From Lepidodermella squamata (taxonomy: Eukaryota; Animalia; Gastrotricha), in NCBI GenBank assembly GCA_047495785.1, contig JBLDXI010000099.1, forward strand, positions 1 through 64,000: 64,000 bases of DNA, in the 5' to 3' direction. Of the stretch, positions 22,975 through 64,000 are shown piece by piece. The translations under genes were made by a program, and so were the position numbers. Under the pieces are notes generated by a model. The model had not been told where the DNA came from. It was given only the letters and a program-made list of their open reading frames with translations, and made no database searches. The first letter of the stretch is position 1. Each line of letters opens with the position of its first letter.

Positions 22975-23020
<46 letters not shown>

Positions 23021-29545: not shown

Positions 29546-29797
29546 TCAACCGGCTAATGTATCAAGTTGTTGTTGAATAGCCTCCATTTCGTTGTACAGT
29601 TTCACAAGGGAATCGTGGTTCAATTCCATTTGAAGCTGTTTTTCTCCCGAGCAACAATCAGAACTCAGCTTTAATTGTAAAACGCTGAATGGCTCGGCGT
29701 ATTTCGCTTGATTGGAAGCAGCCGCAGATATGCCCAACTGCCAACCGACACTTTGCAAATTTAAAGTTTGATCCAATGTTTCGTTCTCTGATGGCAT
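29546..29797 (-). CDS. COMM-domain-only protein, COMMD10-like (83 aa)
   Basis: LQSVGWQLGI...QAKYAEPFSVLQL...LYNEMEAIQQQLDTL matches the COMMD10 COMM domain (LETVGWQLNL...FYNKLETIQAQLDSL). An in-frame TGA lies 2 codons upstream of the ATG. Confidence 0.82.
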   Translation of the reverse strand: MPSENETLDQTLNLQSVGWQLGISAAASNQAKYAEPFSVLQLKLSSDCCSGEKQLQMELNHDSLVKLYNEMEAIQQQLDTLAG

Positions 29798-30061
29798 TAT
29801 TCAAACACTTTTTAGCAAATGCACTAAAAGCAGATTAGAATATTTGGGTATTGGTAAATGTGGCCAACTCGACGGACTCTGTGAGATAGGCGATACGATT
29901 GAAAATGGGCGCTTTACACCAACATGCTCGGTCTTCCTTCTCTTTTTCTTTCAATTAAGGCTGCTTGCTGATGCAGCAAATAATAAATACAGTGTTTTCA
30001 AGAAATAAGAAAGAGTTATACCTAAATAGCTCATCTCTCTCTCATCTCTCCCGCTTGACGT

Positions 30062-44279: not shown

Positions 44280-44351
44280 TCCGTGATGGTCTAGTGGTTA
44301 GGATTCCGCGCTTTCACCGCGGCGGCCCGGGTTCGATTCCCGGTCAGGGAA
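44280..44351 (+). tRNA. tRNA-Glu-TTC: tRNA-Glu(TTC); one G-G mismatch in the acceptor stem
   Basis: Cloverleaf, anticodon arm ccgcg-CT TTC AC-cgcgg, GGTTCGATTCC, downstream T run. Confidence 0.9.
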
Positions 44352-44425
44352 AGTTTTTGAGCTTTGCAATGTCAATTGTAGGTTTTGGTACGAAAAAGAG
44401 AGCTTGCCGCCGAAAAAGTCAAGCA

Positions 44426-44497
44426 AGGCTCAGGGGGGGATCGAACCCTCGATCTTCTGCTTACTAGGCAGACGCTCTACCACTAAGCTACTGAGCC
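44426..44497 (-). tRNA. tRNA-Thr-AGT: tRNA-Thr(AGT)
   Basis: rc ggctcagtagcttagtggtagagcg tctgc CT AGT AA gcaga ... ggttcgatcc. Confidence 0.95.
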
Positions 44498-44573
44498 GAG
44501 GCTGGGTATTTTTGCAGCAGTAGCATTATTTGTAGAGAAGTCTAGCCAGGTTATGAAATTCAGCGAGAAAAAT

Positions 44574-44646
44574 TGGAGGATACGGGCGTCGATCCCGTTA
44601 CCTCTCGCATGCTAAGCGAGCGCTCTACCATTTGAGCTAATCCCCC
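44574..44646 (-). tRNA. tRNA-Ala-AGC: tRNA-Ala(AGC)
   Basis: rc gggggattagctcaaatggtagagcg ctcgc TT AGC AT gcgag. Confidence 0.95.
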
Positions 44647-44717
44647 GTGGTATTAACTAGACAATTTATTGCTATGATTAAAACTGTGGCTTCGTTAAAT
44701 TGCTTTGAAAAAGCTTG

Positions 44718-44790
44718 CGCCCTCCGGGGGACTCGAACCCCCGACCCTGTGATTAAAAGTCACATGCTCTACCGACTGAGCTAGGAAGGC
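44718..44790 (-). tRNA. tRNA-Lys-TTT: tRNA-Lys(TTT)
   Basis: rc gccttcctagctcagtcggtagagca tgtga CT TTT AA tcaca. Confidence 0.95.
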
Positions 44791-44861
44791 CATTGCAAAT
44801 GGCGGCTATTCTCAGAGCGTCATTACATTTAGCCGGCACTTTCACCTGTTGCAAAAGTAAT

Positions 44862-44934
44862 CGACGCTGATGGGACTCGAACCCACAATCTTCGGATCCG
44901 AAGTCCGACGCGATAGCCATTTCGCCACAGCGCC
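44862..44934 (-). tRNA. tRNA-Arg-TCG: tRNA-Arg(TCG)
   Basis: rc ggcgctgtggcgaaatggctatcgcg tcgga CT TCG GA tccga. Confidence 0.93.
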
Positions 44935-45087
44935 TATCGATAGATGTGGCAATGCAATGCGCTCATCCTGTCAACGGCAGCTTCCACGTGGAGGAGAGGT
45001 TTTCTACGCGGAAATGAGCGGCCTAATTTCTCATATTTTCCCAAATTGCGGGTGGATTACAAAAACCTCCTTGTGAAGCTACATCTC

Positions 45088-45171
45088 GTCAGGATGGCCG
45101 AGCGGTCTAAGGCGCCAGACTCAAGATCTGGTCCTCGAAAGAGGGCGTGGGTTCGAACCCCACTTCTGACA
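45088..45171 (+). tRNA. tRNA-Leu-CAA: tRNA-Leu(CAA), intronless
   Basis: gtcaggatggccgagcggtctaaggcg ccaga CT CAA GA tctgg, long variable arm. Confidence 0.96.
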
Positions 45172-45269
45172 CTATTTTTCACATTTTTAGAGCAATTTCC
45201 AGTCACTTTCACCACCGATAAGTATAGCAACTAAGCTTCGTGAGGATGTTACGCGAAAAAATTGCCAAC

Positions 45270-45341
45270 TGGAGGCATCGGGGATTGAACCCGAGACCTT
45301 CACAATGCGAATGAGACGCTCTACCACTGAGCTATGCCCCC
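45270..45341 (-). tRNA. tRNA-Ala-CGC: tRNA-Ala(CGC); T-T mismatch in the anticodon stem
   Basis: rc gggggcatagctcagtggtagagcg tctca TT CGC AT tgtga. Confidence 0.88.
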
Positions 45342-45429
45342 TAGGCTAGTGCAAGAAAATCTTCATAAACTGGTGACTACAACGATCGCAGCAGTGGAGT
45401 GCAACGTTTGCTTGAAAAAAATGTTGCCA

Positions 45430-45501
45430 AGGTCCCATCGAGAATCGAACTCGAGTCGCTGGATTCAGAGTCCAGAGTGCTAACCGCTACACCATGGAAC
45501 C
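45430..45501 (-). tRNA. tRNA-Gln-CTG: tRNA-Gln(CTG)
   Basis: rc ggttccatggtgtagcggttagcact ctgga CT CTG AA tccag. Confidence 0.96.
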
Positions 45502-45569
45502 TCTCGAAAACTGGTTCTGGAAAGGTCAGCTTTAATTCTGTTACTAGCAGCAATGTTGCTAAAAACGTG

Positions 45570-45641
45570 TGCGTCAGCCGGGAGTCGAACCCGGATCGGC
45601 TGCTTGGAAGGCAACCATGCTGACCGTTACACCACTGACGC
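45570..45641 (-). tRNA. tRNA-Gly-TCC: tRNA-Gly(TCC)
   Basis: rc gcgtcagtggtgtaacggtcagcatg gttgc CT TCC AA gcagc. Confidence 0.95.
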
Positions 45642-45717
45642 CTCACGAATGTGAGATGAGAGGACTGTTCTGGAGGCTAACTGCAGAATAGAGTGTCAGT
45701 CGTTATGCAAAAACTGT

Positions 45718-45790
45718 CGTCGCCAGTACCTACGCGCGGAGACCGCATCTGATTTCTAGTCAGACCCCTTAACCACTCGGGCATAGCGAC
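45718..45790 (-). pseudogene. tRNA-Ser(AGA) with a 9-nt deletion removing the T-loop/B-box
   Basis: Near-identical to Ser(CGA) at 46970-47051 but lacks ggattcgaa. Anticodon loop CT AGA AA. Confidence 0.9.
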
Positions 45791-45947
45791 TTGAGTGGCC
45801 CTTCAGCAGTTTCAGAAACGATACACCCGAACGACGTTACTGGCTAGTTTTATATTGGCAACTGTTAAACTATTTTGCTAGGCTCGCTTGCGATATGCTA
45901 GCTTGGCAAGATGTCGTCTGCGGGATATCAATACATTCCAACATCCC

Positions 45948-46031
45948 GTCAGGATGGCCGAGCGGTCCAAGGCGCTGCGTTCAGGTCGCAGTCAGTTTCT
46001 ACTGGCGTGGGTTCGAATCCCACTTCTGACA
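45948..46031 (+). tRNA. tRNA-Leu-CAG: tRNA-Leu(CAG)
   Basis: ctgcg TT CAG GT cgcag, long variable arm, GGTTCGAATCC. Confidence 0.96.
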
Positions 46032-46122
46032 TGACAGTTTTTTAGGCGTATCCACCCAGTACGTAAGTAGCACAGAGACCTGAAGACTTGAAGATTGCTG
46101 ATCAAAGCTGTGCTAATGTGCC

Positions 46123-46195
46123 GGTTCGGTGGTGTAGTGGTTATCACATCTGCCTAACACGCAGAAGGTCGCCGGTTCAATCCCGGCCCGAATCA
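46123..46195 (+). tRNA. tRNA-Val-AAC: tRNA-Val(AAC)
   Basis: tctgc CT AAC AC gcaga, GGTTCAATCC. Confidence 0.95.
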
Positions 46196-46296
46196 GCTGT
46201 AAGCTTTTTGGCTATAACAAAAACCAGCTAAACTGTCTCAATGATAAATTCAAAAAAATTGAACCGCCTGCCACTGTCTCGAGTTCTGTGTGACTC

Positions 46297-46368
46297 TGCC
46301 ACGGCCTGGAGTCGAACCAGGGTCACCTCGGCCACAACGAGGAATACTAACCACTATACTACCGTGGC
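46297..46368 (-). tRNA. tRNA-His-GTG: tRNA-His(GTG)
   Basis: rc gccacggtagtatagtggttagtatt cctcg TT GTG GC cgagg. Confidence 0.95.
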
Positions 46369-46480
46369 TGATTTCGCGGTTAAACACAAAATTCGACAGC
46401 GGTCTATTATCAACATCTAGCTGACCATCATCATCTGCAAAACATCAGGCAGCACTTGTCAGATGGCTTTTACCTGAGAA

Positions 46481-46562
46481 GACGCGGTGGCCGAGTGGTT
46501 AAGGCGATGGACTGCTAATCCATTGGGCTCTGCCCGCGAGGGTTCGAATCCCTTCTGCGTCG
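46481..46562 (+). tRNA. tRNA-Ser-GCT: tRNA-Ser(GCT)
   Basis: atgga CT GCT AA tccat, long variable arm. Confidence 0.96.
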
Positions 46563-46647
46563 TGAATAATTTTGCCGACAAGTTCAAAGCCGACGCTAGT
46601 TTTTCTGGCTTTAAACATGATGACATAAATTTCTTTAAAAATTAATG

Positions 46648-46719
46648 CTCCTTGGCAGGGAATCGAACCCTGGTCTCCCGCGTGACAGGCGGGGATACTA
46701 ACCACTATACTACCAAGGA
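46648..46719 (-). tRNA. tRNA-Asp-GTC: tRNA-Asp(GTC)
   Basis: rc tccttggtagtatagtggttagtatc cccgc CT GTC AC gcggg. Confidence 0.96.
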
Positions 46720-46809
46720 TTGCACGAATGTTGATGGTCTTCGAATAGCTTCTCCCTCGCTTCCACGCCAACAGAAGGCCATTCCGTCAAAAATGTGACT
46801 TGGCGCAGA

Positions 46810-46880
46810 TGCATCGGCCGGGAATCGAACCCGGGCCTCCCGCGTGGCAGGCGAGAATTCTACCACTGAACCACCGATGC
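46810..46880 (-). tRNA. tRNA-Gly-GCC: tRNA-Gly(GCC)
   Basis: rc gcatcggtggttcagtggtagaatt ctcgc CT GCC AC gcggg. Confidence 0.97.
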
Positions 46881-46969
46881 GCTGCTTGATGACTAGCTCA
46901 TGGGCGCCATGTAGAGGCGTTCAAATCATAATGTCGAGCCGCAATTGAGGCCGAACGCCAAAAACTAAG

Positions 46970-47051
46970 CGTCGCCAGTAGGATTCGAACCTACGCGCGG
47001 AAACCGCATCTGATTTCGAGTCAGACCCCTTAACCACTCGGGCATAGCGAC
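46970..47051 (-). tRNA. tRNA-Ser-CGA: tRNA-Ser(CGA)
   Basis: rc tctga CT CGA AA tcaga, long variable arm, GGTTCGAATCC. Confidence 0.95.
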
Positions 47052-47185
47052 TGTTCTAAGATACAATGATACGCCTTTTCAGGCATATCCCAAATTCGAG
47101 CAGTCGCGTATTTCAGACGAGCTAACTCTGACAAGGATATTACTACAGTTTGCAACCATCACCACGGGTAATGCTATTTTGTCAA

Positions 47186-47258
47186 GCCGAGATAGCTCAG
47201 TTGGGAGAGCGTTAGACTGAAGATCTAAAGGTCCCTGGTTCGATCCCGGGTCTCGGCG
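47186..47258 (+). tRNA. tRNA-Phe-GAA: tRNA-Phe(GAA)
   Basis: gccgagatagctcagttgggagagcg ttaga CT GAA GA tctaa. Confidence 0.97.
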
Positions 47259-47310
47259 ACTTCAAACCTTTTTCCCAATAAGCAGAACGTATAGCCAAAA
47301 ATGTTACAAC

Positions 47311-47396
47311 TCCCGCGAGGCGGACTTGAACCACCGACCTAAGGATTGCTGCCTTTCATCTACAGTCCTCCGCTCTACCAGCTGAGCTATCGCGGG
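47311..47396 (-). tRNA. tRNA-Tyr-GTA: tRNA-Tyr(GTA) with a 13-nt intron (47347-47359)
   Basis: rc ...gagga CT GTA G [atgaaaggcagca] A tcctt; intron at the canonical 37/38 position. Confidence 0.95.
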
Positions 47397-47488
47397 TTAG
47401 TTACGCTTACATTGGGTGTATACTATTATAATTCTGTGGAGCGGAGATTGCTCGTAATTCTATTACGGCTGGGCTTTGCAAAAACATG

Positions 47489-47562
47489 TGGCCACTGGGA
47501 GGATCGAACTCACGACCTTCGCGTTATTAGCACGACGCTCTAACCAACTGAGCTAAGCGGCC
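47489..47562 (-). tRNA. tRNA-Ile-AAT: tRNA-Ile(AAT)
   Basis: rc ggccgcttagctcagttggttagagcg tcgtg CT AAT AA cgcga. Confidence 0.96.
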
Positions 47563-47669
47563 AGTTGAACTTGTACGTCGAAACCTTCAACTTGCTTGCC
47601 GGTGATGGTCTGAACGTCGCCGTGAAGTGAAAAATGATCACAATCAACAATTGAAACTCGCAAAAAGAA

Positions 47670-47742
47670 TGGAGGATACGGGCGTCGATCCCGTTACCTC
47701 TCGCATGCTAAGCGAGCGCTCTACCATTTGAGCTAATCCCCC
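47670..47742 (-). tRNA. tRNA-Ala-AGC: tRNA-Ala(AGC), identical body to 44574-44646
   Basis: Same 73-nt sequence with different flanks. Confidence 0.95.
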
Positions 47743-47821
47743 GATGTTGATGCTATGCCATTGTGTATACCCTTTTGACAGCGTCTCACATTGTGCAGTA
47801 TAGCTTGAATGCCAAAACAGA

Positions 47822-47894
47822 TGACCCCGACGTGACTTGAACACGCAACCTTCTGATCTGGAGTCAGACGCTCTGCCAATTGAGCTACGGAGTC
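47822..47894 (-). tRNA. tRNA-Trp-CCA: tRNA-Trp(CCA)
   Basis: rc gactccgtagctcaattggcagagcg tctga CT CCA GA tcaga. Confidence 0.96.
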
Positions 47895-47972
47895 GATATT
47901 TTTAATTTCGGCTTAGACACCCCTTGCGAGCCATTTTTGGCTAACGAACTCCAACCATTGACAAAAACGCAA

Positions 47973-48044
47973 GGGCCTGTCCGGGAATTGAACCCGGGAC
48001 CTCTCGCACCCTAAGCGAGAATCATACCACTAGACCAACAGGCC
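47973..48044 (-). tRNA. tRNA-Pro-AGG: tRNA-Pro(AGG)
   Basis: rc ggcctgttggtctagtggtatgatt ctcgc TT AGG GT gcgag. Confidence 0.96.
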
Positions 48045-48127
48045 AAGTTAAATTCCCAGTCTGGTACCTGAAATCCACTGGAATGAGTAAGGAACGAGTG
48101 AGCCTGTAAATTTATCAAAAACTAACT

Positions 48128-48162
48128 AGGTCCTGCCGAGAGTCGAACTCGGGTCGCTGGAT
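48128..48162 (-). pseudogene. 3' half of a tRNA-Gln, cut in the anticodon loop
   Basis: aggtcctgccgagagtcgaactcgggtcgctggat aligns with the first 35 nt of the Gln gene at 45430 and then switches abruptly to the 4803-bp repeat. Confidence 0.88.
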
Positions 48163-51100
48163 GGGGGCGCGATATGAGAGTTCCGAAGGAACGTAGTTCC
48201 TTACAAGTGTTTTACACATACGCCGTAGATTACCACGAACGAAGTGAGATACCTTCCGAAAGGCACCCCCCGGGAACGAGTTGGTTAATAGGACATACTC
48301 AGATCAACTTACCCGATTTATGGTGGTATCCTGGACCCCTCAGGACCTCCCAGAAGTTTTTTCAGCTCAATCGGAGCTTCCGTTGATTTTCTAGAAATTA
48401 GGACGGTTTTTTCTTATTTTACCGTATTTTTTGGTCACGTGACCTGAAATGGGTAGTATATGAGGGGACAGTAGGAGGATATGATAGGTACACCAAAAAA
48501 CAAACCACGCTGACCAAAGCTTCCCAGCCAGCTGACAGGCTGGCCCCTCGCCCCTGGGGGAGAGGGGCCCACAATAGATCAACAATGCAAGCTCGCGACT
48601 AAAGAGCAAACGACAAAAAGGCAATATAAATAAAATGCAAGGTCAATTGAAAAGACGTGAGGCAAATAAATTGTGAATTATGCATTTAAAGCAACAGAAT
48701 TACCCGTAATCGACTACGGAGAATCCGAATACGACATTCATTTTGTTAAAGCAATGATAATCCAATGATAATCACTTCAACAAATTTCGCGCTCGAGCAG
48801 CTGCGTTACGGACTACGGAGAATCCGAATATGACATTTATTTCATTATCGAAATATGATAACCCATGATAACCCTTCAAACCATTTTCGCCCTCCTTTTA
48901 CCCACTTTCGCCGCGCCACTTGCGTATTTTCACCACGAGTTGCGTATCTTTCACCACCTAACAACTTACGACGCATCACTGTTGAGGTAAGAAACTTCGA
49001 ACAAGCACTTCAAATTATGCGCCACATCGACCCATCGACATCGAGCTGCGTATCGCTGAGGACCATCTCATCATTGTTGTAAATTCAGTCATTCATGTAC
49101 ACTGATGATTGTTATACGTTATACGTATGTGTTCCTTGTGATATGAGTTCTTTGAGAACCTTGTGGAATATGTGTTAAACGTGATTCACCACAAAAGATC
49201 CGCCTTGAAACACAGCTAACTTACACTGCCTTTTTGTGTCCATTGCCATAGAAGGTGCATTTTGCACATTAATCTATGGGTTTACCCGTAATCGACTACG
49301 GAGAATCCGAATATGACATCCATTTTATTATAAAGCAATCCTAACCCCATGATAATCCTTCCAATAATTTTCCAAAAATGTTCCGGCTCGCGCGGCTGCG
49401 CCGCACTCGCTGAAAGAGTTGCGTAACTTTAACCACCTTACAACTTAACGAATCCTCACCGATGAGGTAAGAAACTTGCAAGTGTGAATATGCACAGTTT
49501 CACATAGCAAAAACCAGCAAGTTGGACATGGCACCCCATTAAAAAACCAAATTAGCCAAATTAGCTGAACATGTTCTTTACGAAGAAATGTTTCATATTT
49601 CGACGTTTTCGTCATCAACAATTTTTTATATTATTTAATTCAACCCTGCTTGATATTTTACAAACATTATTCGAAACTTCTAAGAAAGGTCCATAAAGTT
49701 TCACATTTCACAAAATGCATTTTTATTTTTCATTCATGCTACTACGAAGTACTAATGATAGCGCGGTACAATAACAAACACGTTGACATATGATATCTCA
49801 ACGAAGCCGTCATTCACCAGATCTGGATACGGAATCCTCGCCACTTAATTCAACGTTGATTAATATTTTGCAAACATTTTTCGAAACTTTTAAGTATCCC
49901 AGTAGGGTCCAAAAAGTTCAACATTTCCCTTGACAATACCCTCGGGAAGTAGCTGTAGCGCCAGTTTTTTCGAGCTGTACGGCTCTGTGATGCATTACTC
50001 AAATTTCGAACTCGTAAATGGGAGGGAAACCAGATCCTTCACAACTTCACTGGTCTTCTTTTTATAACAAAATCATTCCATCCCATATCTTGCGTCACAC
50101 GCCGCGTTCGCACGCGCATGATTGAGGTTGGAGGTCTTCGACTTTAAAATGATAACCCTACCAGCAATCCGTGCTAACGATTACGTCAGCCGGGAAAGTT
50201 CATCTTTTTCGGACCTTCATCAGCGGGAACGATTACGTCTCATAAAAAAACTAGTTGTTCCCTTCCACGGTCCCGTATATTTCGCGTTGCAGAGATTGTG
50301 GATGTTCCCCAGGCAAAATTGAACTTTAAAGTACAAGTTCCCAACTGCCGTATCGCGCGGAATAATTACTGCAAAGGTTTACCTGCCATTCTCGTTATCA
50401 CTTCTAAATAACGTAAAACAGTCTCGTATCAATTTCGTTGATTTTCGATTTTCACTACATTTAAGGAAAATATATAGTTGGTGCTTGACGTACCGAAAAA
50501 TGAGTGTGTAGTCTGATTCAATGTTAGGGTTCGTATTGTTCGCTTTTAGAGCGGCGTCCTTTTCAAGCTTCACTTTCCGCCCCGTTCACTTTCAAAGGAA
50601 GGTCGAGGGTTCGAACCCAAGCTTTCGTTGAACTGCTCTCTAATGATTTCTGTCAACATGCTCTCGCTGTTGGCGATATTTGGTCATCGACTTCAATTCA
50701 ACTTCAATTCAATCCTTGTCATTCAATTGTAACCTCAACAATTTGTTTTTCAAGAAATTACCGAAACTTCGGATAGTCGTTGGTTCGAACCCAAACCCTC
50801 GTTCAACTGCTCAGCAACGATTTCTTTCATCCGTATGCTCTCAATCTTGGCGTTAACGTCGTTACCGAAATCGATTTACCTTGTACATGTTATTCAATCG
50901 CACCCTGCTTGAATTAGTATGCCAATTTTTTGAAAATTTAAAAGTTAAAAGGTCGAGGTTTCGAACCCAAGCTTTCGTTGAACTGCTTTGTGATGATTTC
51001 GTTCTCCTTCATGCAGCCAGAAGCTCTTGACGTCTAAATGCTCTCGTTTTCGGCGTCAACGTCATTACCGAGATCGATTCAGTTTGTACATTCAATCGCT

Positions 51101-54100
51101 CCCTCCTTCAATTTTTATAACAATCTCGTCATCAGTGACATGGATTCTACCAATTCATGTCATTCAATTGTTACCCCGATTAATTTTTACAACAAACCTA
51201 TCGAAACTTCGAAACTTAACTTAAATTATATTATCCAACCTTCATGTTTTGTTATTTGCGTTCTCGTCATCAGTGTCATCGATTCTCCCAATTCATGTCA
51301 TTCAGTTGTTACCCCGATTAATTTTTACAACAACCTCTCGAAACTTCGAAACTTTAGCTCAAACCTTCTTGTTTTGTTCTTTTTGCGTTCTCGTCATCAG
51401 TGACATGGATTCTACCAATTCATGTCATTCAATTGTTACCCTGATTGTTTTTTTACAACAAACTCTCGAAACTTCGAAACTTCAAAACATGGTCGTGGGT
51501 TCGAACCAGATTTCTCCTTTTTCTACTCATCAATTTGTTCTTTAACCTTCACGCATTCGTTGTTGGCGTTTTCGTCATCAGCTACATCGATTCTACCAAT
51601 TCATGTCATTCAATAGTTCTTTTGTTTGTTTTTCACAACAAAGTCTCACTTCAAAACATGGTCGTGGTTTCGAATCCGATCTCTGGTCGTTCCGCTCTCA
51701 AATTTTATTCTTCAACCTTCCTGTTTTGTTATGTGCGTACTCGTCATCAGTGACATCGATTCTCCCAATTCATGTCATTCAGTTGTTACCCCGATTAATT
51801 TTTACAACAAATTCTCGGAACTTCGAAACTTGACTTAAATTATATTATCCAACCTTCATGTTTTGTTATTTGCGTTCTCGTCATCAGTGACATCGATTCT
51901 CCCAATTCATGTCATTCAATTGTTACCCCGATTAATTTTTACAACAAACTCTCGAAACTTCGAAACTTCAAAACATGGTCGTGGGTTCGAACCAGATTTC
52001 TCCTTTTTCTACTCATCAATTTGTTCTTTAACCTTCACGCATTCGTTGTTGGCGTTTTCGTCATCAGCTACATCGATTCTACCAATTCATGTCATTCAAT
52101 AGTTCTTTTGTTTGTTTTTCACAACAAAGTCTCACTTCAAAACATGGTCGTGGTTTCGAATCCGATCTCTGGTCGTTCCGCTCTCAAATTTTATTCTTGA
52201 ACCTTCCTGTTTTGTTATGTGCGTACTCGTCATCAGTGACATCGATTCTCCCAATTCATGTCATTCAGTTGTTACCCCGATTAATTTTTACAACAACCTC
52301 TCGAAACTTCGAAACTTTAGCTCAAACCTTCTTGTTTTGTTCTTTTTGCGTTCTCGTCATCAGTGACATGGATTCTACCAATTCATGTCATTCAATTGTT
52401 ACCCTGATTGTTTTTTTACAACAAACTCTCGAAACTTCGAAACTTCAAAACATGGTCGTGGGTTCGAACCAGATCTCTCCTTTTTCTACTCATCAATTTG
52501 TTCTTCAACCTGCACGCATTCGTTGTTGGCGTTTTCGTCATCAGCTACATCGATTCTACCAATTCATGTCATTCAATTGTTAACTCGATTTTACAACATC
52601 TTCTCGAAATTTTATGAAAGCGAATAAATGTTCAACTACTCTTTAACGTGCATTCTTCTCTAAATATTTCCAAGCCATTCAAAAATACGTTGGACGGTTC
52701 CTGAGCGAACCCGAAATTACTACTTATCTATAAACACCTAATCCGGAGAACATTCAAATTTACAATTCAATTTCATGTTTCATCAACATTGGGGTGAGGG
52801 GGAAGCACCGTCCCCTCCAACGACGTGGAGGGGATCTCGTAGGGGTGGTTCGAGTCCGTACCCATTACCCAGGAGAGTAGAGAAAAAGAAAGAAAAGGCT
52901 AGCGCAGCGTAAGCCTTGTCGAACTCTCCTGGATGGGGGCGCGACTCTGGGAGTTCCGAAGGAATGGGGGCGCGATATGAGAGTTCCGAAGGAACGTAGT
53001 TCCTTACAAGTGTTTTACACATACGCCGTAGATTACCACGAACGAAGTGAGATACCTTCCGAAAGGCACCCCCCGGGAACGAGTTGGTTAATAGGACATA
53101 CTCAGATCAACTTACCCGATTTATGGTGGTATCCTGGACCCCTCAGGACCTCCCAGAAGTTTTTTCAGCTCAATCGGAGCTTCCGTTGATTTTCTAGAAA
53201 TTAGGACGGTTTTTTCTTATTTTACCGTATTTTTTGGTCACGTGACCTGAAATGGGTAGTATATGAGGGGACAGTAGGAGGATATGATAGGTACACCAAA
53301 AAACAAACCACGCTGACCAAAGCTTCCCAGCCAGCTGACAGGCTGGCCCCTCGCCCCTGGGGGAGAGGGGCCCACAATAGATCAACAATGCAAGCTCGCG
53401 ACTAAAGAGCAAACGACAAAAAGGCAATATAAATAAAATGCAAGGTCAATTGAAAAGACGTGAGGCAAATAAATTGTGAATTATGCATTTAAAGCAACAG
53501 AATTACCCGTAATCGACTACGGAGAATCCGAATACGACATTCATTTTGTTAAAGCAATGATAATCCAATGATAATCACTTCAACAAATTTCGCGCTCGAG
53601 CAGCTGCGTTACGGACTACGGAGAATCCGAATATGACATTTATTTCATTATCGAAATATGATAACCCATGATAACCCTTCAAACCATTTTCGCCCTCCTT
53701 TTACCCACTTTCGCCGCGCCACTTGCGTATTTTCACCACGAGTTGCGTATCTTTCACCACCTAACAACTTACGACGCATCACTGTTGAGGTAAGAAACTT
53801 CGAACAAGCACTTCAAATTATGCGCCACATCGACCCATCGACATCGAGCTGCGTATCGCTGAGGACCATCTCATCATTGTTGTAAATTCAGTCATTCATG
53901 TACACTGATGATTGTTATACGTTATACGTATGTGTTCCTTGTGATATGAGTTCTTTGAGAACCTTGTGGAATATGTGTTAAACGTGATTCACCACAAAAG
54001 ATCCGCCTTGAAACACAGCTAACTTACACTGCCTTTTTGTGTCCATTGCCATAGAAGGTGCATTTTGCACATTAATCTATGGGTTTACCCGTAATCGACT

Positions 54101-57100
54101 ACGGAGAATCCGAATATGACATCCATTTTATTATAAAGCAATCCTAACCCCATGATAATCCTTCCAATAATTTTCCAAAAATGTTCCGGCTCGCGCGGCT
54201 GCGCCGCACTCGCTGAAAGAGTTGCGTAACTTTAACCACCTTACAACTTAACGAATCCTCACCGATGAGGTAAGAAACTTGCAAGTGTGAATATGCACAG
54301 TTTCACATAGCAAAAACCAGCAAGTTGGACATGGCACCCCATTAAAAAACCAAATTAGCCAAATTAGCTGAACATGTTCTTTACGAAGAAATGTTTCATA
54401 TTTCGACGTTTTCGTCATCAACAATTTTTTATATTATTTAATTCAACCCTGCTTGATATTTTACAAACATTATTCGAAACTTCTAAGAAAGGTCCATAAA
54501 GTTTCACATTTCACAAAATGCATTTTTATTTTTCATTCATGCTACTACGAAGTACTAATGATAGCGCGGTACAATAACAAACACGTTGACATATGATATC
54601 TCAACGAAGCCGTCATTCACCAGATCTGGATACGGAATCCTCGCCACTTAATTCAACGTTGATTAATATTTTGCAAACATTTTTCGAAACTTTTAAGTAT
54701 CCCAGTAGGGTCCAAAAAGTTCAACATTTCCCTTGACAATACCCTCGGGAAGTAGCTGTAGCGCCAGTTTTTTCGAGCTGTACGGCTCTGTGATGCATTA
54801 CTCAAATTTCGAACTCGTAAATGGGAGGGAAACCAGATCCTTCACAACTTCACTGGTCTTCTTTTTATAACAAAATCATTCCATCCCATATCTTGCGTCA
54901 CACGCCGCGTTCGCACGCGCATGATTGAGGTTGGAGGTCTTCGACTTTAAAATGATAACCCTACCAGCAATCCGTGCTAACGATTACGTCAGCCGGGAAA
55001 GTTCATCTTTTTCGGACCTTCATCAGCGGGAACGATTACGTCTCATAAAAAAACTAGTTGTTCCCTTCCACGGTCCCGTATATTTCGCGTTGCAGAGATT
55101 GTGGATGTTCCCCAGGCAAAATTGAACTTTAAAGTACAAGTTCCCAACTGCCGTATCGCGCGGAATAATTACTGCAAAGGTTTACCTGCCATTCTCGTTA
55201 TCACTTCTAAATAACGTAAAACAGTCTCGTATCAATTTCGTTGATTTTCGATTTTCACTACATTTAAGGAAAATATATAGTTGGTGCTTGACGTACCGAA
55301 AAATGAGTGTGTAGTCTGATTCAATGTTAGGGTTCGTATTGTTCGCTTTTAGAGCGGCGTCCTTTTCAAGCTTCACTTTCCGCCCCGTTCACTTTCAAAG
55401 GAAGGTCGAGGGTTCGAACCCAAGCTTTCGTTGAACTGCTCTCTAATGATTTCTGTCAACATGCTCTCGCTGTTGGCGATATTTGGTCATCGACTTCAAT
55501 TCAACTTCAATTCAATCCTTGTCATTCAATTGTAACCTCAACAATTTGTTTTTCAAGAAATTACCGAAACTTCGGATAGTCGTTGGTTCGAACCCAAACC
55601 CTCGTTCAACTGCTCAGCAACGATTTCTTTCATCCGTATGCTCTCAATCTTGGCGTTAACGTCGTTACCGAAATCGATTTACCTTGTACATGTTATTCAA
55701 TCGCACCCTGCTTGAATTAGTATGCCAATTTTTTGAAAATTTAAAAGTTAAAAGGTCGAGGTTTCGAACCCAAGCTTTCGTTGAACTGCTTTGTGATGAT
55801 TTCGTTCTCCTTCATGCAGCCAGAAGCTCTTGACGTCTAAATGCTCTCGTTTTCGGCGTCAACGTCATTACCGAGATCGATTCAGTTTGTACATTCAATC
55901 GCTCCCTCCTTCAATTTTTATAACAATCTCGTCATCAGTGACATGGATTCTACCAATTCATGTCATTCAATTGTTACCCCGATTAATTTTTACAACAAAC
56001 CTATCGAAACTTCGAAACTTAACTTAAATTATATTATCCAACCTTCATGTTTTGTTATTTGCGTTCTCGTCATCAGTGTCATCGATTCTCCCAATTCATG
56101 TCATTCAGTTGTTACCCCGATTAATTTTTACAACAACCTCTCGAAACTTCGAAACTTTAGCTCAAACCTTCTTGTTTTGTTCTTTTTGCGTTCTCGTCAT
56201 CAGTGACATGGATTCTACCAATTCATGTCATTCAATTGTTACCCTGATTGTTTTTTTACAACAAACTCTCGAAACTTCGAAACTTCAAAACATGGTCGTG
56301 GGTTCGAACCAGATTTCTCCTTTTTCTACTCATCAATTTGTTCTTTAACCTTCACGCATTCGTTGTTGGCGTTTTCGTCATCAGCTACATCGATTCTACC
56401 AATTCATGTCATTCAATAGTTCTTTTGTTTGTTTTTCACAACAAAGTCTCACTTCAAAACATGGTCGTGGTTTCGAATCCGATCTCTGGTCGTTCCGCTC
56501 TCAAATTTTATTCTTCAACCTTCCTGTTTTGTTATGTGCGTACTCGTCATCAGTGACATCGATTCTCCCAATTCATGTCATTCAGTTGTTACCCCGATTA
56601 ATTTTTACAACAAATTCTCGGAACTTCGAAACTTGACTTAAATTATATTATCCAACCTTCATGTTTTGTTATTTGCGTTCTCGTCATCAGTGACATCGAT
56701 TCTCCCAATTCATGTCATTCAATTGTTACCCCGATTAATTTTTACAACAAACTCTCGAAACTTCGAAACTTCAAAACATGGTCGTGGGTTCGAACCAGAT
56801 TTCTCCTTTTTCTACTCATCAATTTGTTCTTTAACCTTCACGCATTCGTTGTTGGCGTTTTCGTCATCAGCTACATCGATTCTACCAATTCATGTCATTC
56901 AATAGTTCTTTTGTTTGTTTTTCACAACAAAGTCTCACTTCAAAACATGGTCGTGGTTTCGAATCCGATCTCTGGTCGTTCCGCTCTCAAATTTTATTCT
57001 TGAACCTTCCTGTTTTGTTATGTGCGTACTCGTCATCAGTGACATCGATTCTCCCAATTCATGTCATTCAGTTGTTACCCCGATTAATTTTTACAACAAC

Positions 57101-57767
57101 CTCTCGAAACTTCGAAACTTTAGCTCAAACCTTCTTGTTTTGTTCTTTTTGCGTTCTCGTCATCAGTGACATGGATTCTACCAATTCATGTCATTCAATT
57201 GTTACCCTGATTGTTTTTTTACAACAAACTCTCGAAACTTCGAAACTTCAAAACATGGTCGTGGGTTCGAACCAGATCTCTCCTTTTTCTACTCATCAAT
57301 TTGTTCTTCAACCTGCACGCATTCGTTGTTGGCGTTTTCGTCATCAGCTACATCGATTCTACCAATTCATGTCATTCAATTGTTAACTCGATTTTACAAC
57401 ATCTTCTCGAAATTTTATGAAAGCGAATAAATGTTCAACTACTCTTTAACGTGCATTCTTCTCTAAATATTTCCAAGCCATTCAAAAATACGTTGGACGG
57501 TTCCTGAGCGAACCCGAAATTACTACTTATCTATAAACACCTAATCCGGAGAACATTCAAATTTACAATTCAATTTCATGTTTCATCAACATTGGGGTGA
57601 GGGGGAAGCACCGTCCCCTCCAACGACGTGGAGGGGATCTCGTAGGGGTGGTTCGAGTCCGTACCCATTACCCAGGAGAGTAGAGAAAAAGAAAGAAAAG
57701 GCTAGCGCAGCGTAAGCCTTGTCGAACTCTCCTGGATGGGGGCGCGACTCTGGGAGTTCCGAAGGAA
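48162..57767. repeat. Two apparently identical head-to-tail 4803-bp units (48162-52964, 52965-57767)
   Basis: ORF-track entries recur with a constant 4803 offset and identical translations (48174/52977, 50122/54925, 52089/56892). Both units begin a|tgggggcgcgatatgagag. Confidence 0.97.
50590..52615. repeat. Complex minisatellite of ~130-180-bp related subunits with B-box-like ggtcg(t/a)gggttcgaacc; repeated at ~55393-57418
   Basis: Recurrent tcgtcatcag(tg/ct)acatcgattct(c/a)ccaattcatgtcattca. Internal 486-bp repeat (51603/52089). Confidence 0.92.
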
Positions 57768-58370
57768 CGCCAGTTCCTTTACACGTGTTTTACACATACG
57801 CCGTAGATTACCACGAACGAAGTGAGATTTCATCCCAACAGGGGGGCCCGAGAACGCGTTGGTTAACAGGACATTCTCCGATGAAGCCGCCCGATTTATG
57901 GTAGTATCCTGGACCCCTCAGGACCTCCCAGAAACTTTTTCAGCTCTAACGGACCTTCCGTTGATTTTCTAGAAATTAGGACGGTTTTTTCCTATTTTAC
58001 CGTATTTTTTGGTCACGTGACCCGGAATGGGTAGTATATGAGGGGACAGTAGGAGGATATGATAAGGACACCAAAAAACTAACCACGCTAACCAGAGTAT
58101 CCAAGCCAGCTGACAGGCTGGCCCCTCGCCCCTGGGGGAGAGGGGCCTACAATAAATCAACAATGCTAGCTGGCGACCAAAGAGCAAACGACGAAAAGGC
58201 AATATACGTAAAAGTCAAGGTCAATTGAACAATTCTGCGGCGAATAAATTGTGCATTTTCCATATACAACAATAGGTTTACATGTAATCGACAACGGAGA
58301 ATCCGAATATGACGTTCATTTTGTTATGAAGCAATTATAACCCAATGATAGCCCCTCCAACTAATTTTTC
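57737..58370. repeat. Diverged third copy of the first ~630 bp of the 4803-bp unit
   Basis: Colinear with 48162-48790 with scattered substitutions (compare ORFs 48391 and 57969). Confidence 0.92.
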
Positions 58371-58562
58371 TGTTCACTGCTATGGAGTTGGCATGGTTAT
58401 ATTTTTTATTAAATAACATAATGCAGTTCAAGTTTCAGGGCTCGAAGTTTTAAAGCACATTTTCAAGTGAGCGGTTCAATAACGCACTGTCTTATTTCCA
58501 TATTCATATGCATGCGCAGAAACAAAAAAAAATAATAATAACAATAAAAAATTAAAAGAAAA

Positions 58563-58640
58563 TGTGTCGCGGCCGGGACTCGAACCCTCCATTAACTGCA
58601 TTTCACAACGTTACACTGAAACCACTCGGCCACAACACAT
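58563..58640 (-). other. tRNA-derived Pol III promoter-like element (pseudo-tRNA or SINE head)
   Basis: rc has A-box TGGCCGAGTGG, B-box GGTTCGAGTCC, an acceptor-like stem and a downstream T run, but no canonical anticodon arm. Confidence 0.6.
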
Positions 58641-59371
58641 CTGACATATCCATCGCAAATTAAATTTCAATTAAATATTCAACGAAATTATCAAAACAGT
58701 TTCCAGCGCCTTCCGGGAATCGGACGCGTCTCTATATAATTTATTCACTATATAATTCGCTACGCAGTGGTTCGGAAGGCAGTGGTTCGATTGCTGCTCA
58801 CATCACATTTTTCCTTCTCATTTTTTCTTCTTAAAATCAGATTTATTTCTGTTTAATTTTTTTGCAGAGTGAGCAATAAAAAATAAACGTTTACCATTCA
58901 CGTGAATCTTCATGAGTACAAAGTGCATGCCTGTCATATGGCCGACACGCGATTCAGCATCAGCTGTTTCACGGCGCAGCGGCGGCAACAGCAAGCAGAC
59001 GGTTCGATCCGGTATTCAACCATCATTCACAACGATTTATTTCTCTTCAAAACAACCTCTATTTCCCTAATCATTAGAATTACTTATGCTGCCAGCTCCT
59101 ATCAATCTATCTTCCGCTCGAATCGATAACATTGTGACAATGTTGCTCTCTCAGGTTTGCTAGTATATTATTCCCAGTTCATATCACCATTCCCACTATA
59201 ATTACAGCTACTGGATGAAATGGCGATTTCAACACTGTTGTCCACTTTGGTTTTCCATGGTCACTACTCCCTACCAGAAAGCGGTGAGTACATTATTTTC
59301 CTCATTCATTTTTTTTACTATTGTAAAATTTATTGATTTTTTCATTCATTAACACGTTTTTTTTGCTCCCC

Positions 59372-61314
59372 AATATTTTCTTTCGTCGTTATGCTCCCGT
59401 ATTCGACGTTTTCGCCATCAGCAACGTCGATTCCACTAATTCATGTCATTTAATTTTACCCTGATTTACTTTTTTCAAGAATTTTTTCAAACTTTGAAAT
59501 TCCAAACCAAGGTCGTAGGTTGGTGCCCGACCTCTCATTTTTTCGCCCTCAAATATTTTCTTTCATCGATATGCTCCCGTTCTCGACGTTTTCGCCATCA
59601 GCAACGTCGATTCCACTAATTCATGTCAATTAATTTTACCCTGATTTACTTTTTTCAAGAATTTTTTCAAACTTTGAAATTCCAAACCAAGGTCGTAGGT
59701 TGGTGCCCGACCTCTCATTTTTTCGCCCTCAAATATTTTCTTTCATCGATATGCTCCCGTTCTCGACGTTTTCGCCATCAGCAACGTCGATTCCACTAAT
59801 TCATGTCAATTAATTTTACCCTGATTTACTTTTTTCAAGAATTTTTTCAAACTTTGAAATTCCAAACCAAGGTCGTAGGTTGGTGCCCGACCTCTCATTT
59901 TTTCGCCCTCAAATATTTTCTTTCATCGATATGCTCCCGTTCTCGACGTTTTCGCCATCAGCAACGTCGATTCCACTAATTCATGTCAATTAATTTTACC
60001 CTGATTTACTTTTTTCAAGAATTTTTTCAAACTTTGAAATTCCAAACCAAGGTCGTAGGTTGGTGCCCGACCTCTCATTTTTTCGCCCTCAAATATTTTC
60101 TTTCATCGATATGCTCCCGTTCTCGACGTTTTCGCCATCAGCAACGTCGATTCCACTAATTCATGTCAATTAATTTTACCCTGATTTACTTTTTTCAAGA
60201 ATTTTTTCTAACTTTGAAATTCCAAACCAAGGTCGTAGGTTGGTGCCCGACCTCTCATTTTTTCGCCCTCAAATATTTTCTTTCATCGATATGCTCCCGT
60301 TCTCGACGTTTTCGCCATCAGCAACGTCGATTCCACTAATTCATGTCAATTAATTTTACCCTGATTTACTTTTTTCAAGAATTTTTTCAAACTTTGAAAT
60401 TCCAAACCAAGGTCGTAGGTTGGTGCCCGACCTCTCATTTTTTCGCCCTCAAATATTTTCTTTCATCGATATGCTCCCGTTCTCGACGTTTTCGCCATCA
60501 GCAACGTCGATTCCACTAATTCATGTCAATTAATTTTACCCTGATTAACTTTTTTCAAGAATTTTTTCAAACTTTGAAATCCCAAACCAAGGTCGTAGGT
60601 TGGTGCCCGACCTCTCATTTTTTCGCCCTCAAATATTTTCTTTCATCGATATGCTCCCGTTCTCGACGTTTTCGCCATCAGCAACGTCGATTCCACTAAT
60701 TCATGTCAATTAATTTTACCCTGATTTACTTTTTTCAAGAATTTTTTCAAACTTTGAAATTCCAAACCAAGGTCGTAGGTTGGTGCCCGACCTCTCATTT
60801 TTTCGCCCTCAAATATTTTCTTTCATCGATATGCTCCCGTTCTCGACGTTTTCGCCATCAGCAACGTCGATTCCACTAATTCATGTAAATTAATTCTACC
60901 CTGATTTACTTTTTTCAAGAATTTTTTCAAACTTTGAAATCCCAAACCAAGGTCGTAGGTTGGTGCCCGACCTCTCATTTTTTCGCCCTCAAATATTTTC
61001 TTTCATCGATATGCTCCCGTTCTCGACGTTTTCGCCATCAGCAACGTCGATTCCACTAATTCATGTCAATTAATTTTACCCTGATTTACTTTTTTCAAGA
61101 ATTTTTTCAAACTTTGAAATCCCAAACCAAGGTCGTAGGTTGGTGCCCGACCTCTCATTTTTTCGCCCTCAAATATTTTCTTTCATCGATATGCTCCCGT
61201 TCTCGAAGTTTTCGCCATCAGCAACGTCGATTCCACTAATTCATGTCAATTAATTTTACCCTGATTTACTTTTTTCAAGAATTTTTTCAAACTTTGAAAT
61301 TCCAAACGAAGGTC
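59372..61314. repeat. 180-bp tandem satellite, ~10.8 near-identical copies
   Basis: atgctcccgt recurs at 59391, 59571 ... 61191, every 180 bp. Confidence 0.98.
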
Positions 61315-61560
61315 ATTTTTTTGAATTTTAGAATTTCGGAAATTTATATTAGCATTTCATTTTTTTTTATTTTTTCTCTTTTTTACCAGTTTGCGAATCG
61401 AATGACCGATGTTGCACATGCTGTAATCAAATGGCTGAAAACGATTTCAAGACGAAGTGATTTGTGATTTTTCAAACGTGCTACTTCATTTGAACGTTGT
61501 TTACCAGCTTTGCTGTATGATGCTTTTTAAATTATATTGTTCCAAACCCCATTTTCGCTG

Positions 61561-61845
61561 ACCCAGGCAGTAATAGGGTAGAGATGCCGTCTCAATGCCC
61601 GGCTATGCAGTTAAATAGCCAACCGACGTTGGAATAGTCGGTATAAACTTCCACCGTCCCGGCTCAGACGGCGAAAACGACCACGTCTTGGTGAGACGGT
61701 AAAAAAAACTCCGACAAGGCAAGGTCGGTAAAAAACTTCCAAAATGTCCGCAGGGCTGAGCGACCAGCGCCCTCACTGTGATTCGTCACAAATACTAAGC
61801 TGGAAGGGAACCTATGACGATCTGTCAGGCATCTTCGGATCCGAG
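61561..61845. other. GC-richer multi-hairpin island (candidate structured RNA or ssDNA element)
   Basis: About ten short inverted repeats plus long-range pairings gagatgcc/ggcatctt, ccgtctca/tgagacgg and cttcca/tggaag, within AT-rich flanks. Confidence 0.55.
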
Positions 61846-62014
61846 GTTTCTCCCCGATATTTCAATTATTGATGTGCATTGGTAATTTCAATAAAATATG
61901 TTTTTCATTTCAATATATTTTTTTTAATTGATGTTCTTCATTCCATTCGCATATGGTGTTATTTTTTATTTATCTAGTTTTATGATGACAATTTTGTGAT
62001 TATGAACTGGAATC

Positions 62015-64000
62015 ATGGTGAAACCGCCTAATTGGAAGCCAAAATCGAAGGGATCGCGTAAGTGTTCCTTTTGCAAACGGAAAGGTGTTCGAATCTCAAC
62101 CCACTGCGGACTACTCAATTGCTCTAAAGCTAAAGGGCAACACCATCCCAAGCCGTGCATTAAGGTTCAACCTCCACAGTCCGCTTCTCAGTCCAATTGT
62201 ATGTTTTCCTAATCAATCAGTTATATATGTTTCATCTGTTTTTACACAGCCACGTCGTGTTCGCATGTTGGCGAATCTTTATCGGTAGCTCCATCCTCAC
62301 TCACTGTTCAGAATACGTCTCAGCAGTCGTTGATATCTCAAGGCTTGTTCTTGTTATTCATCCTCAAATTGTATAAATTTGCGATAAAATTTCCCCATAG
62401 GTAGCGGCGCTGTTCTGACTGCTTCGGAGCAATTGTTGGATTCTCAAGGTCAGTAATTTTTATTTCTCAACTATAACTTGACATGTGGCTGTGCCGTTCC
62501 AGCTGTTCCGGCTACCCGGGAAGATCCGCTGCCACCTCCGGGTTAGTTGTTAGATTGAGATTTATTTCATGTCTTGAGCGAATACCACTAAGCTCTTTTA
62601 AGAATTATAAGAATTGAAGAGGTGTTAACATATGATTGTTATGTCATTTAGTCTTGTCAAATAATATTTTCAGGCGCTTCTTTGAACGAACGGCAGGAAT
62701 CTAGCGCGCCTGCAACACGTCAGCCAGTAACTCAGCCATCTTGTCCAGTATGCGGCGCAAAAGGCAGGAAGTATCTGACCCACTGCGACAATGAGGAATG
62801 CCGGATTAGTGGCCGCGGGCATCACGCTAATCCCTGTTTCCAGTTGGAACGACCCGGGCTACAGGCCGGTGTAAATCTTGAGCAGCAACGTAAGTATTAT
62901 CCACCGGGTAACAACCTTTCATAAATAATGATTCATTTAGCTGTGGCGTCCTCTGGAGCTGTTGCTGCTACGTCACAACGGTCGCTGCCATCTATAGGTT
63001 AGTTATTTAATCAAGAATTGTGCTGCCTGGTGTTAACTAAAACTGCTGTTTGTTGCAGCTAGTGGTGGTTCTTCTAATGCACCTATTCTATGTGACAACT
63101 GCAGAAGACGATCGGTGCCCTTTTTCGACATCGACATTGCTGTCGTGGAAGAGCCGGTATCTGGACGCAGCTATGGTGCTCTAGGACTAAGGAAAGTCTA
63201 TGAAAACTGCTCGTTATGCCGTTGTTGCCGTCACTATTTGCGCAACGGCGATGCTCGTTTTCCCGCCGGATGGCCAGCCCTTGTTTATAGCCTTTTCTTC
63301 AAAGCAGCGAATAGGCACCTAGCAGAGGCCCTCTCTAACTACATATCGCCGCTCATGAAAATGATGTGGAGCGAGGTCGACGGCTCAAATGTTATGCGGG
63401 ACTCGCAGCCGTGTTTCGTTGACAAGACACGTGATCTGGCTGATTTCATGGCCAATATCTACAAAGACGCAGGTATTCTATCAACCTACTAAATGAGTAT
63501 ACGAATGCAGTTTTTTTTTTAATTGCAGGAGGATTCAGTTACGCGCTAAACATGTACCCAGTGCCCGACGTGATATGTCCGCAAGGTTGCCTCGCTTTCA
63601 TGGAGAAGTGCCAGCTAATCCCGTACCATCATTTGATCCAACATGTCACTGGCAGCAATTTCTTCGATTCCGACTTGCGCTGGTTCGAGTCAAGGAGACC
63701 CGACTGGCCGTGCAACCCAGTGCCTTTCCTCGCTTGGGATTTCGCTGCTGCAATGGTCATGGACGAGACAAAGGGCCTATGCATCCTTGCCTGCATTGAC
63801 CACAGCAAGCCGGACCTGTTTTCCATGTACCTGCATCTCCCTGCGAATCCCGAGTTCGACCGGTTCCACGATCCGCAGCAGACCGAAATCTATGCACCCG
63901 TGCACGTGCAGCCCAATTTCGTCAGAGGCGGGCGAGTCGGTCAGTCGAACGCATCAGTGCCAGTGACAAAAACTCTGGGTGATCAATTAGGTGTCGGCAG
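62015..64000 (+). CDS. 5' part of a multi-exon Cys/His-rich gene, probably the large protein of a mobile element (Helitron-like); open at the window end
   Basis: Short introns join two copies of CxxC-x7/8-THC-x4-C-x6/7-HH-x2-PC, then CDNCRR, LCRCC..YL, GWPALVYSL, CFVDKT, ICPQGC, GLCILACIDH, HLPANP. The last exon (~63529-64000) is open but missing from the ORF track. One junction (~62343) appears to need a GC donor. Confidence 0.7.

Follow-up and report, generated by a model that had tools for sequence, protein, structure and literature searches.

Putative Helitron-like elements stacked in a tRNA-Gln gene of Lepidodermella squamata: a five-nucleotide target that copies the element's own 3' end

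Introduction

Why should the same short motif stand in front of a repeat unit both within a tRNA gene and within the repeat array itself? The question is raised by a 64,000-nt stretch of DNA from the gastrotrich Lepidodermella squamata (contig JBLDXI010000099.1, positions 1 to 64,000 of the forward strand; 'the window' below), in which half a tRNA-Gln(TTG) gene borders directly on a repeat array. At this first junction, GTCGAACTC (48142-48150) and gggtcg (48151-48156) are followed by CTGGA (48157-48161), and the T at 48162 opens the first head. At the third head, GTCGAACTC (57721-57729), tc (57730-57731) and CTGGA (57732-57736) precede the T at 57737, and identical letters stand before 52934. 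A preliminary description of the window gave the letters and coordinates of the motif before 48162, 52934 and 57737 correctly and took the copies inside the array for a mimic of the tRNA target.

It is probable, with a good measure of confidence, that the array in the window consists of Helitron-like rolling-circle transposons stacked head to tail and lodged in a single tRNA-Gln(TTG) gene, within its anticodon arm, with CTNGA as the presumed site of cleavage by a Rep protein. Two kinds of element are stacked: a non-autonomous one of 4,772 nt, and an autonomous one of ~15 kb that carries a putative Rep/PIF1 gene.

Layout of the locus

The array is laid out in Table 1. It is preceded by a block of 21-22 tRNA genes packed into 44280-48044, with A34 anticodons, and the contig itself starts with a 325-bp satellite (window 3-4253; 13 copies, 98% identity, GC 56%). 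The A34 anticodons, the dense packing of the tRNA genes and the short GT..AG introns of the gene downstream are eukaryotic traits.

Table 1. Coordinates of the features at the tRNA-Gln locus and in the adjoining array
Feature	Position	Strand	Remarks
3' half of tRNA-Gln(TTG) gene, host flank	48128-48161	-	aligned with intact tRNA-Gln; cut at the anticodon loop/stem boundary
CTGGA, host copy of the CTNGA target pentamer	48157-48161	+	insertion point directly 3'; 9/9 independent 5' flanks end in CTNGA
Non-autonomous unit 1, A-type head TGGGGGCGCGATATGAG..., 4,772 nt, without long ORF	48162-52933	+	
Terminal hairpin of unit 1 and unpaired 3' A	52869-52933	+	flagged motif 52918-52933 is internal loop and 3' arm
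31-nt stub, the first 31 nt of a B-type head	52934-52964	+	inside the duplicated 4,803-nt period
Non-autonomous unit 2, identical to unit 1	52965-57736	+	
Terminal hairpin of unit 2	57672-57736	+	identical to 52869-52933; motif 57721-57736 is loop, 3' arm and CTGGA
B-type head and 5' part of autonomous unit, ~15 kb	57737-64000	+	continues to the contig end at 72,530

The stretches 48162-52964 and 52965-57767 are 100% identical, with 0 mismatches over 4,803 nt, and represent one duplication. The junctions before 52934 and 57737 are thus one copied junction and not independent witnesses, so that the two diverged heads of the preliminary description do have the same letters upstream, but one of these junctions is a copy of the other. 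The first head, at 48162, reads TGGGGGCGCG, and the B-type head is 88% identical to the A-type head. Both kinds of unit recur elsewhere: the 4,772-nt spacing of the A-type unit is found again on contig C42, and B-type heads lie 14,992-15,179 nt apart on C42 and C20.

The 4.8-kb units are made up largely of sub-repeats of 127-486 nt, and none of their ORFs exceeds 164 aa. Between the B-type head and the gene of the autonomous unit lies a 180-bp tandem array (59358-61314; 10.9 copies, 98% identity), which is ~64% related to sub-repeats of the 4.8-kb units. The sub-repeats also carry GGTTCGAR, a motif like the B box or T arm, at 50599-52503 and 55402-57306, and further copies lie at 52847 and 57650, with spacings of ~170-540 nt; the window has 35 matches where 4.6 are expected. 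These motifs are possibly Pol III/TFIIIC sites or tRNA-derived modules. A search of the whole window against Rfam returned tRNAs only, and no RNA family within the units.

Among the 27 tail junctions described below, the 31-nt stub of a B-type head occurs only in the window. The joint that follows it, GAAGGAA|TGGGGG (52964/52965), departs from the CTNGA rule set out below. Read-through with a stop at the GTTCC-GAA-GGAAC hairpin of the head may have produced it, or it may mark a chimeric element with two 5' termini, as in FoHeli (PMC5148889).

The tail and its terminal hairpin

The flagged motif makes up the final 16 nt of the repeat unit, its ordinary 3' end, and it stands upstream of a head because the next unit begins right after the tail. 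The last 65 nt fold as a hairpin with an outer stem CCAGGAGAGT/ACTCTCCTGG of 10 bp, followed by one unpaired A; the DNA fold has a z of -4.4, and 0/200 shuffles fold as well. The flagged GTCGAACTCTCCTGGA supplies the internal loop and the 3' arm of this terminal stem.

Across the genome (121 Mb), all 27/27 family-1 tails end in the hairpin arm and CTGGA. No fewer than 26 of the 27 abut another head, of types A, B, B', C, D and others, with beginnings that include TGGGGGCGCGA.., ..CGCGCGACAG.., TGAGAGGCGCG.. and TGAGTGGCGCC... The one remaining tail closes an array and reads CTGGA|GAGTTG, which assigns CTGGA to the tail and T to the head. It had been suggested that the element carries an internal copy of its target, acting as a guide, an attP-like core or a site of self-insertion. 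The last of these roles is borne out by the 26/27 tails that abut heads, the 3' end being the self-insertion site, but nothing suggests either of the other two.

The 9-mer within the motif is variable, reading GTCGAACTC in 13 family-1 tails, GTGGAACTC in 9 and G--GAACTC in 5, so that GTCGAACTC, for which a fixed place in all copies had been raised as a question, is not fixed even within family 1; ACTCTCCTGGA, by contrast with the 9-mer, is invariant (27/27). Diverged families keep the terminal hairpin with changed stems (CCAGAA/TTCTGG-A in one case, CCAGTAAA/TTTAC.TTGA in another), and the C15 lineage keeps CCTTGTCGAAC-gtt-CTGGA|TGATAGACGCG. Terminal inverted repeats are absent: the best match between the head and the reverse-complemented tail is 8 nt long (p 0.16).

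Insertion sites across the genome

Heads are found at 29 loci genome-wide, on contigs C13, C20, C33, C42, C43 and C99, the last being the contig of the window. A family-1 tail precedes 24 of them, and 4 are array starts preceded by unrelated DNA. The flanks of the array starts end in CTGGA (the tRNA), CTTGA (C42), CTTGA (C43) and CTCGA (C20), the flank of a diverged head on C13 ends in CTCGA, and those of four independent D-type heads end in CTAGA, CTAGA, CTGGA and CTCGA; two further D-type flanks are homologous to each other and were entered as one in the count. CTNGA|T is therefore the reading at 9/9 independent flanks of array starts or solo heads, with all four bases occurring at N and nothing conserved further upstream among the nine. 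Once the first CTNGA site is given, eight more would arise by chance with a probability of about (1/256)^8. The element begins 5'-TGRG.GGCGC at its 5' end. The base on the 3' side of the element is known for three ends, where it is T (tRNA), G (C43) and A (C7), so that in this small sample the 3' flank is not constrained.

The insertion rule is a 5-nt target, CTNGA, that copies the element's own 3' end, with neither GTCGAACTC-dependent nor tRNA-specific targeting. Repeated insertion at GTCGAACTC-N2-6-CTGGA|T, as previously proposed, was right in that insertion is sequence-specific, but the site shrinks to CTNGA|T, and the predicted enrichment of GTCGAACTC upstream of independent insertions is not seen in any of the eight non-tRNA flanks. 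The supposed mimicry also runs in the opposite direction: it is the antisense strand of the tRNA that happens to resemble the tail.

How the arrays grow can be read in part from their composition, which for C20, C33, C42 and C43 was taken from match coordinates only. The arrays at C42:1225759-1347348 and C20:3092456-3189061 contain recurring multi-unit blocks, with spacings of 2,469, 4,772, 5,871 and ~15,173 nt, and blocks similar to those of C42 are present on C20 and C33. That unit types are mixed within arrays argues for successive insertion. The repeated blocks, together with the perfect 4,803-nt duplication in the window, indicate that blocks have also been duplicated or mobilised together. 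No homology to contig C99 is seen in the flanks of the other arrays.

The tRNA-Gln gene as a target

The tRNA-Gln(TTG) gene that received the array has many intact relatives. An identical 33-mer occurs ~170 times in the genome, within large tandem tRNA arrays, and the intact copies always continue as CTGGA|TTCAAAGTCC. The gene order in intact arrays is ..Ile-Ala-Trp-Pro-Gln-Glu-Leu-Asn-Cys, and the window has Ile-Ala-Trp-Pro followed by the half Gln gene. A paralogous empty site, CTGGA|TTCAAAG, lies in a closely related block: the 3.97 kb of 44195-48162 match C20:3191571-3195525, in which the Gln gene is intact, at 99.5% identity, and up to CTGGAT the window agrees with the intact paralog at 99.8%. 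Giant tandem tRNA arrays with periods of ~3.5, 4.5 and 6 kb occur across the genome, for example at C1:4.93-5.18 Mb, C9:5.49-5.65 Mb, C10:2.43-2.73 Mb, C20:3.19-3.26 Mb and C31:1.78-1.87 Mb. On the left, the tRNA block in the window begins (44195) precisely where a tRNA-Pro(cgg) has its 3' end, beside a (CA)n tract. Capture of the 3.97-kb block through read-through by an upstream element was considered and rejected, as the edge at 44195 has no tail and shows only (CA)n and the tRNA-Pro 3' end.

The break at the boundary of anticodon loop and stem invites the idea that the elements integrate specifically into tRNA genes, with tRNA-Gln as an att-like site, in the manner of integrases or Pol III-directed retroelements, and with the element carrying a copy of that site. 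The C20 array likewise borders a tRNA array, and the units are rich in the B-box-like GGTTCGAR. Against this, only 1 of the ~170 identical tRNA-Gln(TTG) sites is occupied, which is far from recurrent insertion at a defined tRNA position. Nor is there a tRNA gene within ~1.5 kb on either side of the other array starts, of one array end or of the diverged tails, and the flanks of solo heads are unrelated sequence. The encoded protein is moreover of putative Rep/helicase type, and no integrase is present. Integration specific to tRNA genes is thereby largely refuted and hardly credible, and with it goes the earlier view of the tRNA as a recurrent target.

The first junction might also have no connection with transposition, and instead result from a microhomology-mediated deletion or recombination that joined a tRNA array to an existing repeat array at CTGGAT, as the preliminary description had allowed for a one-off event. 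CTGGAT is indeed common to both partners, the left edge of the tRNA block also lies at a tRNA end, and the right junction on C20 (described below) resembles a homology joint. The break, on the other hand, falls at the same nucleotide of the element, the T of TGGGGG, as in eight other independent flanks that all end in CTNGA, and a complementary tRNA half continues elsewhere with no tRNA bases lost or gained. A rearrangement of this kind is highly improbable, and insertion at CTNGA is the better account of the junction.

A candidate right junction on C20

The only clear orphan 5' half of tRNA-Gln in the assembly is at C20:3189057; it is picked up only by a looser pattern, which has a second match, on C48. 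Before the C20 half stands ...cggtacgCTGGA, and after it come Glu-Leu-Asn-Cys, exactly the continuation absent after the Gln half in the window. A mixed array (...B, B', A, ..., C, D) has its right edge at this half gene, and the last tail|head joint of that array is at 3183711/3183712. When both contigs are aligned with the intact paralog, the match of C99 ends at CTGGAT and that of C20 begins 14 nt ahead of it, with 12/14 of these positions in agreement. As the complementary halves neither lose nor double any tRNA bases, they point to precise insertion without target duplication. The arrangement fits such an insertion, with its two sides now on different contigs and the array split between C99 and C20.

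Other features of this end complicate the picture. What borders the tRNA half is not a standard tail: it is a piece of ~470-490 nt present in two copies, one here (C20:3188589-3189077, L080) and one on the minus strand of C42 (~1,894,356-1,894,842, L081), where it carries 21 nt like the tRNA-Gln 5' half with two small deletions. Within the piece, a core of 90 nt belongs to a dispersed repeat. On its left side the C20 array borders on an unrelated flank of its own. Patterns that combine a standard tail with the 5' half of the tRNA (CTCCTGGA..TCARAGTCC; H-CTGGATTCAAAG) have no match in the assembly. Given the different contig, the non-canonical end and the 12/14 tRNA match, the right junction could be a recombination joint or a chimeric assembly. 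The possible readings of the C20 end are accordingly three: a bypassed terminator with a surrogate stop at CTGGA, a recombination joint, or an assembly chimera.

Resemblance between tRNA and tail beyond the pentamer

The tRNA flank and the tail share more than CTGGA, and this longer resemblance, which is non-trivial but modest and of borderline significance, can be read in two further ways. To weigh it, the 25 nt upstream of the pentamer were compared with the corresponding 25 nt of the tail and scored against a background of 20,000-30,000 random 25-mers from the window.

In the first reading, the nuclease or a partner recognises sequence beyond the pentamer (for example GTCG(A)AC, 6-12 nt upstream), so that tail-like sites are favoured as targets or serve as surrogate terminators. 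The 9-nt local match in the tRNA flank has a p of ~0.005, and among the single flanks L025 agrees with the tail at 10/15 anchored positions (p ~0.002) and L097 gives p 0.016. Deeply diverged tails on C3 and C15 keep CCTTGTCGAAC, the C20 right end of the insert matches the tRNA at 12/14 nt, and a hit in one of ~170 tRNA sites is unlikely against the ~2x10^5 CTNGAT sites expected genome-wide on a rough estimate. Yet the eight flanks outside the tRNA do not reach significance when combined (Fisher p 0.12 local, 0.07 anchored), and 169 of the ~170 identical tRNA sites carry no insertion. D-type tails lack the 9-mer, and tails that look intact differ in it; its distance to CTGGA is 2 nt in the tail and 6 nt in the tRNA, and all of these tests were chosen post hoc. 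Tail-like sequence may be preferred more widely, but we consider such extended recognition unlikely.

The second reading turns resemblance into homology: an ancestral element would have read through into a tRNA-Gln gene and so acquired its present 3' end. When the tail is read in the orientation of the tRNA, ATCCAG, GA and GAGTTCGAC are common to both, with a single gap of 4 nt, the tail domain contains a T-arm-like GGTGGTTCGAGTCC, and Helitrons are able to make new 3' ends by bypass (PMC4778049). The similarity is nevertheless confined to 17 nt, the hairpin partner of the motif has no counterpart in the tRNA, and the 9-mer is missing from D-type tails, all of which makes a tRNA origin of the tail quite improbable. 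Insertion at CTNGA, with the tRNA as one host site among others, is retained here as the preferred reading.

The encoded protein

The putative Rep/PIF1 gene of the B-type unit starts at ~62015 and has several exons separated by short GT..AG introns. One ORF matches AAA_30 (3e-8) and PIF1 (6e-5), and the preceding ORFs show ..TITCND.., ..SHLHMG.. and tyrosine motifs (HLH, TITCN). Searches of the Rep ORF against Pfam and against PDB sequences gave no match, and 21/30 of its language-model neighbours (Atlas) carry PF14214, Helitron_like_N, at 0.92-0.93. The identification of the domain as Rep is thus putative and draws on the motifs together with the language-model neighbours.

Relation to known systems

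The closest known system is that of the canonical Helitrons (HLE1, Helraiser/Helibat). Like the elements described here, in which the Rep part is putative, these have a Rep-helicase gene and neither terminal inverted repeats nor target duplication, their 3' hairpin is subterminal and near a short CT-rich end (CTRR, compared with CTGG-A here), the 5' flank is A, and head-to-tail joints, stacks and 3' bypass products occur (PMC4778049, PMC11417382). For Helraiser, the 3' hairpin acts as a terminator, circles with precise head-to-tail junctions are formed, and bypass creates new 3' ends (PMC4778049). The Helitron-like features at the present locus are the subterminal 3' hairpin, with its 10-bp stem 1 nt from the end, and an apparently precise insertion without duplication, whose sides are on different contigs. 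The differences concern the termini and the target. An HLE1 element is delimited by 5'-TC ... CTRR-3' and inserts between A and T; here the element opens with TG(G/A)G and closes with CTGGA, and the flanking A is part of the target pentamer CTNGA, not of a dinucleotide A|T. In addition, the base on the 3' flank varies, a single nucleotide separates the hairpin from the end, and the putative Rep is too diverged for Pfam.

HLE2 elements (Helitron2/Helentron) share with the present ones long non-coding arrays of tandem repeats inside the element and a 3' stem-loop (PMC11417382). They are defined by short terminal inverted repeats, of 12-16 nt, and by T|T insertion, whereas here no inverted repeat is found and the 5' flank is A in 9/9 cases. 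Some HLE2 members have an extra nuclease domain, with GIY-YIG mentioned once, for HelenSM92 (PMC11417382). The non-canonical FoHeli Helitrons of Fusarium have a target longer than a dinucleotide, TNAT|T, and some copies carry short 5' termini in duplicate, one of them of 31 nt, comparable to the stub at 52934-52964 (PMC5148889); self-insertion has been given as their explanation (PMC5148889). FoHeli is of the HLE2 type with inverted repeats, however, and its target and termini differ from those described here.

In bacteria, the IS91 family offers a parallel: its target tetranucleotide is nearly the same as the cleavage site at terIS, and one-ended transposition follows when termination fails (PMC13181058). 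IS91, IS801 and IS1294 resemble the present elements in that the target next to the origin end is like the terminator cleavage site, in having a subterminal palindrome and in the lack of target duplication (PMC13181058). These elements are bacterial and differ in protein architecture, so the likeness is an analogy of logic and not membership. Bypass of the terminator with use of a surrogate stop is described both for Helraiser (PMC4778049) and for the IS91 family (PMC13181058).

Described targets of Helitron-like elements are the dinucleotides A|T or T|T (PMC11417382), with short extensions to TNAT|T or TTTT|T (PMC5148889). Neither a CTNGA target nor a target equal to the element's own 3' end is described in the Helitron literature as far as it was searched.

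Proposed mechanism and significance

Termini, hairpin, CTNGA rule, empty paralogous site and stacking are observed directly, and from them a mechanism can be sketched in which cleavage by the encoded Rep and the order of events are inferred. An HUH nuclease would cut single-stranded DNA just 3' of CTNGA. A cut at the flank|head junction would start transposition, a cut after the tail hairpin would stop it, and a cut in target DNA would lead to integration; circles or read-through products would be expected to carry a CTGGA|TG joint. Since the tail itself ends in the target pentamer, each resident copy would be a preferred landing site, and mixed-type stacks would build up. The antisense strand of tRNA-Gln, which offers CTGGA and, partly by chance, the tail-like GTCGAACTC, would have been struck once.

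What looked like a mimic is in fact the normal tail of the unit, and the tRNA was an incidental site of insertion. The target, as delimited by nine independent junctions and one empty site, is 5 nt long and identical to the 3' terminus of the element itself. This identity of target and terminus offers a simple and testable reason for the head-to-tail pile-up, parallel to that of the bacterial IS91 family. It also provides exact termini for annotating a lineage that would probably be missed by standard Helitron finders, which rely on TC/CTRR or on inverted repeats.

A bolder version, which we hold to be doubtful, would have the single pentamer CTNGA serve as start context, stop signal and target, with tail-like host sites, such as those on the antisense strands of the ~170 tRNA-Gln genes, acting as preferred targets or surrogate terminators. 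If it were true, the element's own 3' end would be its best landing pad, giving self-stacking arrays of 30-100 kb, and the growth of Helitron arrays would be tied to the giant tRNA arrays of this genome.
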